Part shown: in pieces, positions 2,821 through 24,625 of the stretch | Numbering within the stretch: the stretch's first letter is position 1 | Layout of the letters: the number at the start of each line of letters is the position of its first letter | Virus record (IMG/VR): IMGVR_UViG_3300018424_000006 | Span: 155,820 to 219,819 of that record | Reading direction: 5' to 3' (one strand) | Length of the DNA: 64,000 nt | The notes under the pieces: generated by a model | The model's database searches: none | Told to the model about the DNA's origin: nothing | The model's input: the letters and a program-made list of their open reading frames with translations, nothing else | Translations under genes and position numbers: made by a program

Positions 2821-3822
2821 TTAGAAAACGAAACCGTCTTCTTCTTCACCGGCTACTTCAGTAGTCTTAGAAGCTTCTTCTACCAATGCAGATGCCGCAC
2901 GAGTAAAGTCTGCTACTTTTTCTTTTAGCTTGGCGATACGAGGCTCACGCTGAACCGCTGTAGTCGCGAAGTGTAGAGATAGCTTTTCATCTGGCATACT
3001 GTCCAGAATCTCTTTAGGGTAGTAACCTACAGTTGAGTACAACTGGCTACCAGAGATTTGCTCAGAATCTGCATTAGGAATAACCGATGCAGTACTGATC
3101 ATCTTGCCCTTTAGAGTGTCTAGACGACTGACGTCAGACGTAATAACGACATCCACTAGTTGTGGAGGTACGCTAGTTACTTTGTTATAGCAGATGAAGT
3201 TAGCAATGTCTGCACGGTCTAGCTCAAGGTGTTGTTCACCCATCAATAGAGCCATGCGAGTTGCATCGTCAAGAACGCGAGCATCAACCTTTGTACGAGT
3301 ATTGATGTTACGACTACCTTCTTCGCCATTAGTGATGTTCTCATAATAGCTAATAAGGATTGGGTTCTTGGCGGTCTTTGAAGCTAGGTTCTGAAGAGTA
3401 GCTAGAGTCTTCAAAGTGTTGTCAGTTTCTTTTGCAGAGATAGTGCTACCCACTACTAAGCAAATTGCTGGTACCTGACGACGCGCTAGTTCTGCAGCTA
3501 CTAATGGGCCAATAACAGAACCAGAACCACCAGAGGTGCTGAACAGTACAAGGTTAGTAGTACCCGGTTTGAAAGTTTTCAACATTTCAACCACTTGGTC
3601 ATATGCAGCTTGGTGAGCCACTGCACGATTCTTGCCTGCTCCAGACATACCTGCTACCACGAAGGTATTGGCATTGTCTTCTTCGGTTACGTTTGAATGG
3701 CTGGTATCCAAGAAAGTCTTTTCAACTGCTGGATAACCTACAGCGTTAGGGACAGTCAATTGCTTGGCCAAGTTAATGCCACAACCACCACAACCGTAAA
3801 TACGAAGTTTTGCTTTTTCCAT
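2821..3822 (-). CDS. phuZ: PhuZ phage tubulin/FtsZ-like GTPase
   Basis: RIYGCGGCGINL N-terminal motif, tubulin signature SGGSGSVIGP, LDRADI T7-like loop, acidic-aromatic tail EEEDGFVF; 333 aa. Confidence 0.95.
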   Translation of the reverse strand: MEKAKLRIYGCGGCGINLAKQLTVPNAVGYPAVEKTFLDTSHSNVTEEDNANTFVVAGMSGAGKNRAVAHQAAYDQVVEMLKTFKPGTTNLVLFSTSGGSGSVIGPLVAAELARRQVPAICLVVGSTISAKETDNTLKTLATLQNLASKTAKNPILISYYENITNGEEGSRNINTRTKVDARVLDDATRMALLMGEQHLELDRADIANFICYNKVTSVPPQLVDVVITSDVSRLDTLKGKMISTASVIPNADSEQISGSQLYSTVGYYPKEILDSMPDEKLSLHFATTAVQREPRIAKLKEKVADFTRAASALVEEASKTTEVAGEEEDGFVF

Positions 3823-3903
3823 AGTTCTCCCCTTTAGGAAATAAGATTAATGTATTTGGGTTTTCTTACTACCATGAGAGTTTTATTATCTCATGCCACT
3901 AAA

Positions 3904-11098: not shown

Positions 11099-11382
11099 TG
11101 GAAAACATGACTCAGTCCCCTAACTGGGATCTACCTACGTCTTTAGCGGAATTAATTGAATACAATGAAGATTGCCTTCTTTCCGAAAAGCCGGACCGCA
11201 TGGCAATTCTTCTATCTGACCCTAATGACCCGGGTAAATTGGTTATATTGGAATATGGTGATGATGGCTGGCAGAACCGTCCGGGTTCTCGTGAGTGGGT
11301 TTGTGACATGCCTATCCTGGATCTTCAGGAAGGTATTAACGCCGTACTAGAACGTCATACTTTCGATAATGAAAAAGGATAG
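11098..11382 (+). CDS. Hypothetical protein
   Basis: 94 aa; TAATG coupling to the macrodomain gene; AAGGA RBS. Confidence 0.65.
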   Translation: MENMTQSPNWDLPTSLAELIEYNEDCLLSEKPDRMAILLSDPNDPGKLVILEYGDDGWQNRPGSREWVCDMPILDLQEGINAVLERHTFDNEKG

Positions 11383-12118
11383 ATTTGGGATAGAGCAGTA
11401 TCCCGATGAAATTGCTTACCAATCAGTGCCTTGTCCCGGACACGAGGCCTATCTGAGGGAAATGTATATGCCCAGTTATAAATCTAACGTAGTTATAGAA
11501 CGAGCCGCTATTTCAGCTAGACAAACTGGCAAGACTTTAGCTAATAAGTATGCGTTTGATATTCTGGCAGAACGTTTACGAGATAGTCATGGGGATAACT
11601 TTTCTTTTAGTTCGATAAGTCCTTTTGGGACTGCTTCACATATTTCCGAACTCTATCCTCGGATTAACTTAGACTATATGTATGAAAACAGTGCGGCTAT
11701 TCGTAACCATATATCTAATGCTAGGTTCTCTTTGAAGATGTTTAAAAACTCTTCAGTATTTCAGACGATGTTGAAGTGTTGGCTACGCTATACTATCGAT
11801 ATGAATCGCTTTGTCGATTCTCTTATAGCTAAAGAGGAGGTAAGCCGGTATAATGAAAGTCTTTCTCCGATAGGAAACTTCATTAACCAAGCTAAGGCTA
11901 AGTTCGGATTTAGGGATGACTATTATACCCCTATTAACGTAGGTACACTTTCCAGCTATGATGAATCCAAATACGAATTTGTCTATGGCATACCACAACC
12001 TAGAAATACTTTCCCGTTCGAGATTTTTGATTACTATTTAGATAACCGTAATACTGGTCTTGATACTCTGAATGTCTTTTCGGAAGAGTTCTATTGGTTA
12101 ATTATCTACCCTAGCTAA
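11369..12118 (+). CDS. Hypothetical protein
   Basis: 249 aa, overlaps the upstream gene, followed by a terminator; contains ARQTGKT. Confidence 0.7.
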   Translation: MKKDRFGIEQYPDEIAYQSVPCPGHEAYLREMYMPSYKSNVVIERAAISARQTGKTLANKYAFDILAERLRDSHGDNFSFSSISPFGTASHISELYPRINLDYMYENSAAIRNHISNARFSLKMFKNSSVFQTMLKCWLRYTIDMNRFVDSLIAKEEVSRYNESLSPIGNFINQAKAKFGFRDDYYTPINVGTLSSYDESKYEFVYGIPQPRNTFPFEIFDYYLDNRNTGLDTLNVFSEEFYWLIIYPS

Positions 12119-12205: not shown

Positions 12206-12661
12206 CTAACCTACTTTTTTCATTTGAATGACGTTGTCATATTTGCCCATGACTTTACAACCTTTAAAGTGAAGATCCTTTTCAAAGTTAAAGCAAGCTA
12301 CTCGAGCTAGATTGTTTTCAATCAAGTTCTTAAGTAACTTAACGTTATCAGGATCTTCAATGGGGTTAGTATTGAACAATTCAAACATATGCTTTTGTAT
12401 TTCAACAACAAGATAGGTGTTATCTACATCTTCTTTGTACATTCCAAATTGCACTCGAAACTCTTGACACTTTTTAACATAAAGACCTAGCTCATCTAGA
12501 CGAGGTTTAGTCATTAAGTTAAGCGCATCCAAACGAACTGCGTCTTCAATGTCTTCCGTAAATGCTCGTACAGAATATTGAAGGTTAAGATCACGACGCG
12601 GAATGTTTTCCCCAAGTACTTTTAATTTGGAGAGTACAAACTCCTTTATTTCTTTGTTCAT
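12206..12661 (-). CDS. Hypothetical early protein
   Basis: Start moved to ATG 12661 (MNKEIKEF), in ATGA overlap with the upstream microprotein stop. Confidence 0.7.
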   Translation of the reverse strand: MNKEIKEFVLSKLKVLGENIPRRDLNLQYSVRAFTEDIEDAVRLDALNLMTKPRLDELGLYVKKCQEFRVQFGMYKEDVDNTYLVVEIQKHMFELFNTNPIEDPDNVKLLKNLIENNLARVACFNFEKDLHFKGCKVMGKYDNVIQMKKVG

Positions 12662-12807
12662 TGCTCGTCTACCCACTTAGGGTCGTTATAGCACGAAGAA
12701 CAGTGATCCTGATATTCACGATTACCGTCTTCGTCTACTCCAGTTAAAACGATCTGTGCTCCGCAGCAGTCAGAAACTTTATCGTCCATATCTGTAGTTG
12801 TTTGCAT
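12658..12807 (-). CDS. 49-aa zinc-finger-like microprotein (absent from ORF track)
   Basis: MQTTTDMDDKVSDCCGAQIVLTGVDEDGNREYQDHCSSCYNDPKWVDEQ; GAGGAGAA RBS; ATGA coupling to the next gene. Confidence 0.75.
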   Translation of the reverse strand: MQTTTDMDDKVSDCCGAQIVLTGVDEDGNREYQDHCSSCYNDPKWVDEQ

Positions 12808-12811
12808 TTTT

Positions 12812-12985
12812 TTATTTCTCCTCTCTACCAGATTTATTGTCCGTCACTCTAACCGGCCTCATATCCCAACTACATTTACTGCAGTGATCAGAATAGTAAT
12901 GCCAGCCATTTTTAAATTTGCCGTAATAATCAACAGGCACATTGCAGCAGGGAGAAATAAAATCACCCTTCTTCTTAGTCCTCAT
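12812..12985 (-). CDS. 57-aa zinc-finger-like microprotein (absent from ORF track)
   Basis: MRTKKKGDFISPCCNVPVDYYGKFKNGWHYYSDHCSKCSWDMRPVRVTDNKSGREEK; first ORF after the early promoter at 13019-13031. Confidence 0.75.
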   Translation of the reverse strand: MRTKKKGDFISPCCNVPVDYYGKFKNGWHYYSDHCSKCSWDMRPVRVTDNKSGREEK

Positions 12986-13018
12986 CTAGCAACCCTTTTA
13001 TTATCTCATGTCAATATA

Positions 13019-13031
13019 GTAATATAGAATT
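13019..13031 (-). promoter_or_regulatory. Early promoter (TATATTAC)
   Basis: AATTCTATATTAC on the minus strand. Confidence 0.75.
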
Positions 13032-13057
13032 GAAATGTTTTCCACAACGGCAAAAAA

Positions 13058-13093: not shown

Positions 13094-14311
13094 TTAGCCG
13101 TTATAGTAACGGATACTAAGAATACGTAAAGAAATGTAAACTAAGACAGCTACTTTAGTTGCAGATAGAGTTGCTTCATGGCGAGCGCTTATAGAACGCT
13201 TCACAATGTCCTCTACCTTCTCTTTTATGTCTAGCACTGCTTTGTTATTAGTTCGATGCGATCGGAAGCCTGAGCGCAATCTAGAGACGATCTCGGGGAT
13301 GTTCTTTTCATCTATCTCAGAACTTTTCATGAACTGGTGAATATAGACTACTAGAGCCCCTACTTCTTTAGTGATATCGAATCGCTTCTTACCGTCAATG
13401 TTATCTGAGATAAAGTCTAGAGCTTTAACTAGATTACTCTCAGTAGCAGATTCTACTAAGTTAAGAGTTGCTTGAATTAACTCTTCCTTAATGAAGTCAT
13501 TTCGATACTGAAGAATGTCATGCATCTTCTTGGCATTATCTTCGATATTGTTAGTAAACTCACGAAGTACTTGCTCGCCTTCTAGGTTTGTAATGAAAGC
13601 TTGCTGACTAAGAATACGAGCTTCTGAATCTCGTAATTCATAGAAGGTACTAGTCAGCTTATTATAGCTCTTACGAACCCTATCCTGAACATCATTTACT
13701 AAAGCAACTTGCTCTTCGTTATCATCCATCTTATTTAAAGCTTTTTGATGGATACTCTTCTTACTCAAGAAGCCGTCTGTACGATATTCAATTAATGCTT
13801 TCCAATTACCAGTCAGCTTAAGTAGGCTCTTTCTGCTAAGCTGTTCATATACTGCCTGTGCCAATGCTTCATCTGCACGATATGGAAAACGCTTAGCGTC
13901 CACACTGGTTAGGAATTTAATCTGCAGCATGTTCATTGCTGCATGAGCACCCATCTCCTTATATTTGGAAGGAAGATCTGCTGTAAGGCATTTATGAATA
14001 ATCCAAGTAAAGATATAGTTTACTGGGTTACCAGAAACCGCAAACTCTTTGTTGATCTCTGGTAGTTCGTGTAATTCTTCTTTGAAAGATTCTATATCTA
14101 GAACCTCGGCTACATCTTCGACCCAGTAGTCACGATCTTCAGACTTAAAGCGGATAGGATAAACTCCTATTAAGTTTCCGCCAAAGAACTGGATATGGTC
14201 ATCGTTCTTATGAATAAAGTTATTATAACCGCGAACGATCATTTCCATCTTAGCGCGGTCAAATTTTGCCTCGCTATATTTTTCAATTAAATCTTTGATT
14301 GTTTTCTTCAT
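13094..14311 (-). CDS. Conserved phiKZ-like virion structural protein
   Basis: 405 aa; H..FFGGNLIGVYPIRF motif recalled from conserved phiKZ-like virion proteins next to the tail tube/sheath genes. Confidence 0.75.
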   Translation of the reverse strand: MKKTIKDLIEKYSEAKFDRAKMEMIVRGYNNFIHKNDDHIQFFGGNLIGVYPIRFKSEDRDYWVEDVAEVLDIESFKEELHELPEINKEFAVSGNPVNYIFTWIIHKCLTADLPSKYKEMGAHAAMNMLQIKFLTSVDAKRFPYRADEALAQAVYEQLSRKSLLKLTGNWKALIEYRTDGFLSKKSIHQKALNKMDDNEEQVALVNDVQDRVRKSYNKLTSTFYELRDSEARILSQQAFITNLEGEQVLREFTNNIEDNAKKMHDILQYRNDFIKEELIQATLNLVESATESNLVKALDFISDNIDGKKRFDITKEVGALVVYIHQFMKSSEIDEKNIPEIVSRLRSGFRSHRTNNKAVLDIKEKVEDIVKRSISARHEATLSATKVAVLVYISLRILSIRYYNG

Positions 14312-22969: not shown

Positions 22970-24625
22970 ATGCCCATAGTTCAACATGACGGTAAAAAGT
23001 CAACTGTTATAAATATGGATGAGTTGTACCAAGGAGTCGATCCTGCCGAAGGTGAAACTCTCCATATTCCTGCTATAGGAGATCTGGTTGTTGATTTCAA
23101 TCGTGGTTTCTTTAAGGTAGACGCGGTTGACCCAATTACCAAAATCCCGACCCTATCTCCATGGAAACCTGAGACATTAGGCGACTCTGGAAATAGTGAT
23201 GACATTAACGCGGGTCTAACTCGCAACTTTACTTCTGGCGCTAACCGCGCCTTTGTAAATTACAATGTTTCTCCACCGACAATCAACATCGATCGTCGAG
23301 TACTTATTATGGATGCGGCAGCTACGACTGTTAAAATCTTTAAAGGTACTGATACTAGTTCCGCTACCGGGACGGTCATTAGTCGTGTATATGACAATAA
23401 CCAAAACTTCATTAGCGAGAACGTAGAACTTGAACGCGTCTTCCCTGAGAACGACGTTATCAAATATGTTCCAGAGACTCACATTGATACCGGCCTTAAT
23501 CAGGGCGAAATTGTTACTGTAGTTGCTTACTCCGCAAATAGCGGCGTAGTACATGAAGAACATTTCACGACTCGACTAACGGACGCCATTGGTACTCCAG
23601 ATCTTAATAATAAGTATCTGGTTGGTATCAGTCTGGTATCTGACTTAGTGTCTGCTGAAGATCCCGAGATGATCCTGAATGACCTTAACGTTCCTTTCAA
23701 TACTACATTAATGCAATGTCGTTTACATTATAACGACGGCTCCCATGTAGACATCGGTATCGATGGTATGAAAGCTAAGTTAATGGGTATTGATAATTTC
23801 AATGAATCTACTCTAGGTCCTGCCAATGATATTCTATTGGTATACTACCCTTCTGCAGATGAACCAGCGATAAATGTAGTTGATGGCGAGAATCCTGTTC
23901 TCACTAAGAGCTATAAGCTTTCTAATCAGCGTGGTGAGGCGACCTTCGGATTCAAGTTATATGTCATTCCGAAATATCAAGATATTAGTCTTGGCTATAC
24001 TTTAGAATATCGTCTAACTAACTTTGACTACGACATCGATGTGGACGTTACCGCAAATGTAACAACTACTCTTCGTTCAGACGGTTCTGCATGGTCTCCG
24101 ACTAACTACGGTAATCGTCAAGAGCTGTTGGCAGTACTTCGCTTAGAAGATGTAATGCCGGGCATCTATGATGGCTGGATTCATACTCAGAACTTTAATA
24201 TCACTCTTGACGTTCCTACTGACGGCGCTGGTAATAGCTGGGTTATTGATTACGCGGCTGATAACTCTCGTCTATTGGGTTACGATGTGGATATCGAAGC
24301 ATCTAATATTAATAGTCGTGTGTTGATTCAGAACGGACACGTTAATCAAGCTGACTGGCTTGATAAGCTTTACTATGAAGCTGTGCCGTTGTTCGACCAA
24401 GATCTTATTTCCGCTCCTCCTCGTCCGACACATTTCCGATTCACCTATGGCGAACCGGCAATCTCTAAAGTGTTTGGCATTGACGAATGGGATAAGTATC
24501 TTTCTCGCGATACTGCTGATCCGTATACTGCACATGAAACAGCCACAATTACGTGGTTATTGGAAGATGGACCAAGTACCTTTACTTTGGGTCATACTCC
24601 ACTACTAGTTCGTATTGTAGACTAA
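22970..24625 (+). CDS. Virion structural/baseplate protein (phiKZ gp26-like)
   Basis: 551 aa; IP.IGDLVVD N-terminus and P.PTHF motif; directly upstream of the terminase. Confidence 0.75.
   Translation: MPIVQHDGKKSTVINMDELYQGVDPAEGETLHIPAIGDLVVDFNRGFFKVDAVDPITKIPTLSPWKPETLGDSGNSDDINAGLTRNFTSGANRAFVNYNVSPPTINIDRRVLIMDAAATTVKIFKGTDTSSATGTVISRVYDNNQNFISENVELERVFPENDVIKYVPETHIDTGLNQGEIVTVVAYSANSGVVHEEHFTTRLTDAIGTPDLNNKYLVGISLVSDLVSAEDPEMILNDLNVPFNTTLMQCRLHYNDGSHVDIGIDGMKAKLMGIDNFNESTLGPANDILLVYYPSADEPAINVVDGENPVLTKSYKLSNQRGEATFGFKLYVIPKYQDISLGYTLEYRLTNFDYDIDVDVTANVTTTLRSDGSAWSPTNYGNRQELLAVLRLEDVMPGIYDGWIHTQNFNITLDVPTDGAGNSWVIDYAADNSRLLGYDVDIEASNINSRVLIQNGHVNQADWLDKLYYEAVPLFDQDLISAPPRPTHFRFTYGEPAISKVFGIDEWDKYLSRDTADPYTAHETATITWLLEDGPSTFTLGHTPLLVRIVD

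Follow-up and report, generated by a model that had tools for sequence, protein, structure and literature searches.

A zinc ribbon is built around two knuckles, normally C-x-x-C (or C-x-x-H), that together supply four metal ligands. Among small phage proteins, P2 Ogr and P4 Delta are transcription activators and Lar serves restriction alleviation, all of them acting on host machinery, and small cysteine-rich ORFans are common in phage genomes. To our knowledge, the early accessory genes of nucleus-forming jumbo phages are almost all uncharacterised. Prokaryotic one-domain zinc-finger microproteins, where their action is known, work via binding partners (PMC6562870, PMC11241148), and some predicted zinc-finger microproteins do not bind zinc (PMC11241148). 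Work on jumbo phages that encode their own RNA polymerases has shown that the virion RNA polymerase recognises, as its early promoters, conserved AT-rich motifs centred near -10 (PMC7598289), and for phiKZ and 201phi2-1 the predicted core of the early promoters is the 8-nt sequence TATATTAC (PMC7058600, table 2). Here we describe a short transcription unit that begins with a pair of microprotein genes, and propose, with a probability of about 0.6, that the two are anciently duplicated jumbo-phage microproteins, each a beta-ribbon metal domain, which serve as binding modules of an early unit.

A three-gene unit in an uncultured jumbo phage

The window, which is the whole 64,000-nt stretch of DNA analysed, comprises positions 155,820-219,819 of a virus record that is 219,819 bp long and carries direct terminal repeats, and the sequencing runs that contain this genome are salt-marsh samples. 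Judged from its PhuZ, RNA polymerase and shared core genes (Table 1), the genome is that of a chimallivirus-type (phiKZ-like) jumbo phage; a tail sheath and a virion structural protein are also encoded within the window. The 405-aa protein encoded directly upstream of the unit has tblastn matches in 288 phiKZ-like jumbo phages of Vibrio, Pseudomonas, Erwinia, Ralstonia and other hosts, at identities of 34% or less, and no close relative in IMG/VR. The nearest cultured phage is Vibrio phage sm033 (34% identity for the 405-aa protein), in which the synteny is not the same and the 405-aa homologue is not followed by small ORFs of this kind. A megablast search with the region as query had no match among 50,697 phage records, and there is no close cultured relative. 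Two further genes near the unit are of separate interest. The Macro-domain protein on the plus strand could act on ADP-ribose and may have relevance to counter-defence, and a 249-aa ORF (window 11369-12118, plus strand) is called as 216 aa on ENA contig k141_319496 and as 249 aa on JGI contigs, such that a start-site or indel variant appears to exist among otherwise near-identical genomes.

The two microprotein genes, designated type A (P0001) and type B (P0002), lie on the minus strand where the earlier note had located them, separated by 4 nt. Their description as unannotated is correct for the ORF track on which that note was based, but public gene calls already list both ORFs on nine near-identical contigs. 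Over the microprotein stretch these contigs differ at one base, which falls in the third gene, and are otherwise identical; being so alike, they are uninformative on selection. The difference in the third gene is a single A/G change near the start of the gene.

The early promoter that had been proposed ahead of the pair is present as an exact phiKZ-type TATATTAC core, positioned 33 nt upstream of the type A ATG, and this copy also fits an extended consensus, cgtgttctAGaat..tt.aAttCTATATTACtTt.aTGa, shared by about 18 minus-strand copies across the genome. Genome-wide, the minus strand carries 22 copies of the core against 4 on the plus strand, a bias suggesting that nearly all early units would be oriented one way. 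The same motif stands ahead of PhuZ and the RNA polymerase beta-like gene, which fits an early class, and we infer from the motif that the microprotein unit lies behind a phiKZ-type early promoter. The position of the beta-like gene directly behind a TATATTAC copy is as expected for an early-expressed gene of the non-virion RNA polymerase. We also noted that the CGTGTTCTAGA element, forming the upstream part of the long consensus, is absent from the published phiKZ core, and that the leaders following the promoter copies at 13026 and 3911 (the latter before PhuZ) share CATGAGATAATAAAA (window 13000-13014 and 3885-3899, minus strand), which may be a common 5'-UTR element.

Terminator-like hairpins flank the unit on both sides, so that it is self-contained, with three genes in roughly 0.9 kb. 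The Shine-Dalgarno box GAGGAGAA is located 8 nt upstream of the type B ATG, and the type B stop codon overlaps the start of the 151-aa gene in an ATGA at 12661-12658; both the box and the coupling to the third gene had been noted earlier. The pair thus heads a unit behind an early-type motif, as proposed, although the term operon covers only three genes. The third gene product, P0003, gave no match by tblastn against the 50,697 phage records, and a word-index search of 5.8 billion proteins recovered only a 99%-identical copy (P0011); every search ended without a relative other than near-identical copies.

Assembled contigs from three salt-marsh metatranscriptome runs, from three studies, span the microprotein ORFs (12392-12983, 12487-13046 and 12743-12999). 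These are low-depth assemblies, and neighbouring genes of other classes are patchily covered too; the contigs are consistent with transcription and are not proof of it, DNA carry-over being possible.

Table 1. Features of the unit, its surroundings and the related marine contig (L010). Positions refer to the window unless another sequence is named; G000:C1 is the phage genome.
Feature	Position	Strand	Remarks
Type A microprotein gene, P0001	12985-12812	minus	57 aa
Type B microprotein gene, P0002	12807-12658	minus	49 aa
Third gene, P0003	12206-12661	minus	151 aa; ORFan
TATATTAC early-promoter core	13026-13019	minus	extended match to about 13050
TATATTAC copies within the window	57319, 52052, 36280, 28505, 16362, 13026, 10515, 4954, 3911	minus	
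GAGGAGAA, Shine-Dalgarno box of P0002	12815-12822	minus	within the last codons of P0001
Terminator-like hairpin	13085-13057	minus	11-bp stem and T-run; ends the upstream 405-aa gene, insulates the unit
Strong terminator-like hairpin	12165-12128	minus	17-bp stem and T-run; end of the three-gene unit
405-aa gene directly upstream of the unit	13094-14311	minus	phrog_2921, 1e-97
PhuZ tubulin homologue	2821-3822	minus	phrog_4733, 6e-73; behind a promoter motif
Macro-domain protein, 165 aa	10601-11098	plus	Pfam Macro 24.5 bits (cut-off 22); phrog_335 'phosphatase' 6e-37
RNA polymerase beta-like subunit, 682 aa	G000:C1 136196-138244	minus	phrog_3295, 4e-179
RHS-repeat ORF	L010 3-215	plus	just upstream of the A/B pair
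AAGGAGAA, Shine-Dalgarno-like box with A-rich spacer	L010, before the type B start		counterpart of GAGGAGAA

An old, narrowly distributed pair

The type A protein carries S11-x-C13-C14 ... Y31-x-x-H34-C35-x-x-C38 and the type B protein S12-x-C14-C15 ... Y32-x-x-H35-C36-x-x-C39. The signature is shared as had been claimed, with S-x-C-C followed in both after 19-20 residues by D-H-C-S-x-C (SPCCN...DHCSKC and SDCCG...DHCSSC). Pairwise BLASTP aligns the two proteins ungapped with 13/36 identities (E 7e-8 for this single comparison), and a six-frame search of the whole 219,819-bp genome with the regular expression CC-x(12-30)-HC-x2-C finds only these two. Shuffled genomes give a mean of 0.1 matches (30 mononucleotide shuffles) and 0.0 (30 triplet shuffles). 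The motif pair is not due to chance, and the proposal that the two proteins are paralogous is upheld by the alignment and by the restriction of the motif to them.

When 1.84 billion cluster representatives were searched exhaustively with an HMMER profile, two small relatives only were recovered, a 61-aa protein resembling type A (P0009, profile E 3.3e-5) and a 47-aa protein resembling type B (P0006, profile E 1.8e-9). Both are encoded on a single 1,017-bp marine metagenome contig, adjacent to each other and in the order A then B, with the second ORF overlapping the first by 14 nt. The earlier note had suggested a profile search as a check on conservation of the cysteine pattern, and in this divergent pair the motif and tandem order are both kept. 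Nine columns are invariant in all four proteins (M1, T3, S11, C13, C14, Y31, H34, C35 and C38). Identities across the two lineages are 23/55 for A with A and 27/46 for B with B, and both comparisons are closer than A with B, which argues that the duplication is older than the split of the two lineages and points to an old duplication of which both copies have been kept. Synonymous sites are saturated between the lineages (pS 0.70-0.74) and dN is 0.55 for the A pair and 0.32 for the B pair, with nominal dN/dS of about 0.27 and 0.09 given that dS is saturated. Judged from the motif, the tandem order and a dN well below the saturated dS, P0001 and P0002 are real protein-coding genes. Four long hits from the same profile search (P0005, P0007, P0008 and P0010) were rejected as spurious, each with 6-11 matched stretches; the two of these that were read, P0005 and P0007, are Cys-containing repeat proteins.

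The flanks of the marine pair are unlike those of the phage locus, the pair being preceded by an RHS-repeat ORF and followed by an unrelated ORF of 75 aa, and since the flanking genes differ it is the pair itself that constitutes the conserved element. The phage genome encodes a 269-aa RHS-repeat protein (G000:C1, about 23,097-23,906, minus strand; Pfam RHS_repeat 28.3 bits) far from the microprotein pair, and the pairwise E value between it and the marine RHS-repeat ORF is 6e-5, a weak hint that the contig may derive from a related phage whose genes are arranged differently. The contig ends in 230 bases (790-1017) of purine-rich, low-complexity sequence, with GAGGA/GAAGA runs and no clear plus-strand ORF, which may reflect either a repeat region or an artefact of assembly.

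Other searches returned no further relatives. With both microproteins as queries, tblastn against the 50,697 phage records at E <= 10 gave chance rows only; the word-index search of 5.8 billion proteins with the type A protein recovered only itself; and a pattern scan derived from the four-sequence alignment found nothing new in IMG/VR, nothing in GTDB genomes, and only the same phage in JGI metagenomes. Nothing in Pfam, PHROGs, PADLOC or PDB sequences exceeded threshold. The sub-threshold Pfam rows are zf-A20 (16 bits, cut-off 21.6) and A2L_zn_ribbon (E 0.027), each with one member of the pair; PHROG rows have E >= 0.04, and PADLOC and PDB gave none. On these searches the A/B family is a narrow, lineage-specific one, from two lineages, and constitutes a new sequence family, with a variant signature, among the small Cys-rich phage proteins, which as a kind are very common.

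Predicted fold and metal site

AlphaFold2 was run on the four-sequence alignment. The type A model has a mean pLDDT of 67.5, with 76-81 over residues 11-40, and the type B model a mean of 77.3; the core of the two models lies at 76-89. In these moderate-confidence models both proteins are all-beta with four short strands, arranged as strand-loop(CC)-strand-strand-loop(HCxxC)-strand, with the CC pair in the hairpin loop that joins strands 1 and 2 and H-C-x-x-C in the one that joins strands 3 and 4. Foldseek searches of the models against PDB and BFVD found nothing at E <= 0.001, the best E being at least 0.2. With VIA-align, the type A model reaches a maximum Z of 4.0, the small SH3/Tudor/PipX barrels scoring 3.7-4.0 and the N-terminal zinc ribbon of NrdR, the closest superposition (rmsd 1.9 A over 39 residues), scoring 3.6; for the type B model Z is 2.5 or less. 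Non-significant matches include the InsA and PriA zinc ribbons in ESM Atlas (TM 0.46-0.57) and Ogr/Delta, Lar and NrdR-like rows in BFVD. A language-model search led to unnamed phage clusters (0.93-0.94), with zinc-binding families as weaker leads. Among the named rows of these weak fold matches zinc ribbons recur, and small SH3/Tudor-like barrels score equally well.

Compared with a zinc ribbon, the second knuckle, C35-x-x-C38, has the C-x-x-C form and in both models the knuckles sit in the turns of two packed beta-hairpins, whereas the two cysteines of the first site, C13 and C14, are directly adjacent in all four sequences, a departure from C-x-x-C. A zinc-ribbon-like metal-binding mini-domain is a plausible, and the best, reading of the two proteins, with metal binding predicted from the models. 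Each microprotein would be a single domain, a four-stranded beta-ribbon in which the hairpin loops carry CC and H-C-x-x-C, and the two loops would jointly coordinate a single structural metal ion, with Zn2+ the likeliest, as a zinc ribbon whose first knuckle is atypical and short. The zinc finger of the earlier note is a putative one: the signature has CC and not CxxC, and no structure or sequence match is significant.

The five conserved candidate ligands in each chain would also be compatible with an Fe-S site or with an intermolecular one. That the conserved cysteines and histidine hold an Fe-S cluster or form a thiol-disulfide redox switch instead of binding structural zinc would fit a vicinal CC pair, which is unusual among zinc ribbons, and the conserved set C, C, H, C, C is broadly similar to the 3Cys-1His ligation of clusters. 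However, the sequence searches gave no match to an Fe-S family, the models predict the topology of a zinc ribbon or a rubredoxin-like knuckle pair, and we consider such a site very improbable.

Possible roles and comparison with known systems

Under the reading that we prefer, of two anciently duplicated metal-binding microproteins, the virion RNA polymerase would transcribe the unit at an early stage and its genes would be translated in a coupled manner; the two microproteins, being too small for catalysis, would serve early in infection as binding modules on a macromolecule of the host or the phage. We infer this role, whether the target is of the host or of the phage, from size, timing and narrow distribution. 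The diverged A and B copies probably bind different surfaces or partners.

Several other explanations were weighed against this one. The least credible is that the ORFs are not translated and that the region is a long 5' leader or a regulatory RNA of the 151-aa gene: the ORFs are certainly short, but their amino acids are conserved despite saturated synonymous change, the motif columns are invariant, and start codons, Shine-Dalgarno boxes and reading frames are all kept on the marine contig, where the downstream gene is unrelated. It is more a matter of doubt whether the products are early host-takeover or anti-defence effectors, as the earlier note had put it, inhibiting a specific host protein such as a nuclease, RNA polymerase or a defence sensor. 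The early-type promoter, the very narrow distribution with fast divergence that is typical of accessory arms-race genes, and the weak structural rows to phage zinc proteins of the Ogr/Delta and Lar types would all suit this role. Against it, those rows all have E > 0.4, the proteins lack significant similarity to any anti-defence or takeover family, with no PADLOC, Pfam or PHROG match and with both neighbours in the unit being ORFans, and a host target is indistinguishable from one of the phage (the phage nucleus, RNA polymerase or a replication component). A takeover function is thus possible and a doubtful assignment.

An obligate A-B heterodimer, possibly with interchain metal sites and acting as one two-subunit effector, is unlikely, even though the A-then-B order is kept in both known lineages, translational linkage is tight in each (the 4-nt gap here, the 14-nt overlap on the marine contig), and five conserved candidate ligands per chain exceed the need of one tetrahedral site. 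The suggestion of a heterodimer had come from charge, and the contrast is real in the salt-marsh phage pair, where the type A protein has a net charge of +5 (pI 9.2) and the type B protein one of -9 (pI 4.05). It is not kept in the only known relatives, with net charges of -6 and -1, and the hint that it offered is lost with it. Moreover, in each model the CC and HCxxC loops come together within a single chain, and prediction of a complex of both proteins with two Zn gave no support, although its score of 0.00 counts neither for nor against binding. Improbable, too, is a more far-reaching version, that S-x-C-C ... Y-x-x-H-C-x-x-C defines a new mini-domain with a site unlike that of classical zinc ribbons, and that the pair is a two-subunit early effector with which nucleus-forming phages disable a specific host function before the nucleus is made; here the site formed by the vicinal cysteines together with the knuckle histidine would, for example, bridge a heterodimer or be an Fe-S site.

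If two old, metal-binding microproteins are indeed what the locus encodes, it would be a small and cleanly bounded early unit of a nucleus-forming jumbo phage, and the vicinal-cysteine first knuckle would represent a variant ligand geometry for the zinc-ribbon group. Both proteins are short enough for direct synthesis and study, and the conserved A/B pair is a simple system for the divergence of duplicated microproteins. The practical value is limited, the phage being uncultured, the family coming from only two lineages, and proteins of this kind being common in phages.

With zinc ribbons such as the N-terminal domain of NrdR, the C-terminal ribbon of Rpb9/TFIIS and InsA, the microproteins share a core of about 40 residues, the same predicted order of strands and knuckles, a classical C-x-x-C second knuckle and, for the NrdR ribbon, the best tight superposition; they differ in the first knuckle, a vicinal C-C after S-x in place of C-x-x-C, in the conserved histidine right before the second knuckle, and in the lack of a significant sequence or structure score. 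Like the C(P)XCG microproteins of Haloferax volcanii (PMC6562870, PMC11241148) they are stand-alone proteins of <70 aa with a single predicted metal-binding mini-domain, although the two groups have no sequence relation. P2 Ogr, P4 Delta and Lar are likewise phage-encoded, of 40-75 aa, with Cys-based mini-domains, and are among the top non-significant BFVD rows, but at E > 0.4 (0.5-1.5), with 13-21% identity and different Cys spacing; Ogr moreover acts with the host RNA polymerase, whereas phiKZ-like phages have no need of it (PMC7598289). The closest correspondence in organisation is with phiKZ-type early units, with which the locus shares the identical 8-nt TATATTAC core, AT-rich surroundings, its place at the head of a short unit, a strong strand bias and the occurrence of the same motif before PhuZ and an RNA polymerase subunit gene (PMC7058600, PMC7598289), while the extended upstream element (cgtgttctAGa...) is specific to the salt-marsh phage.
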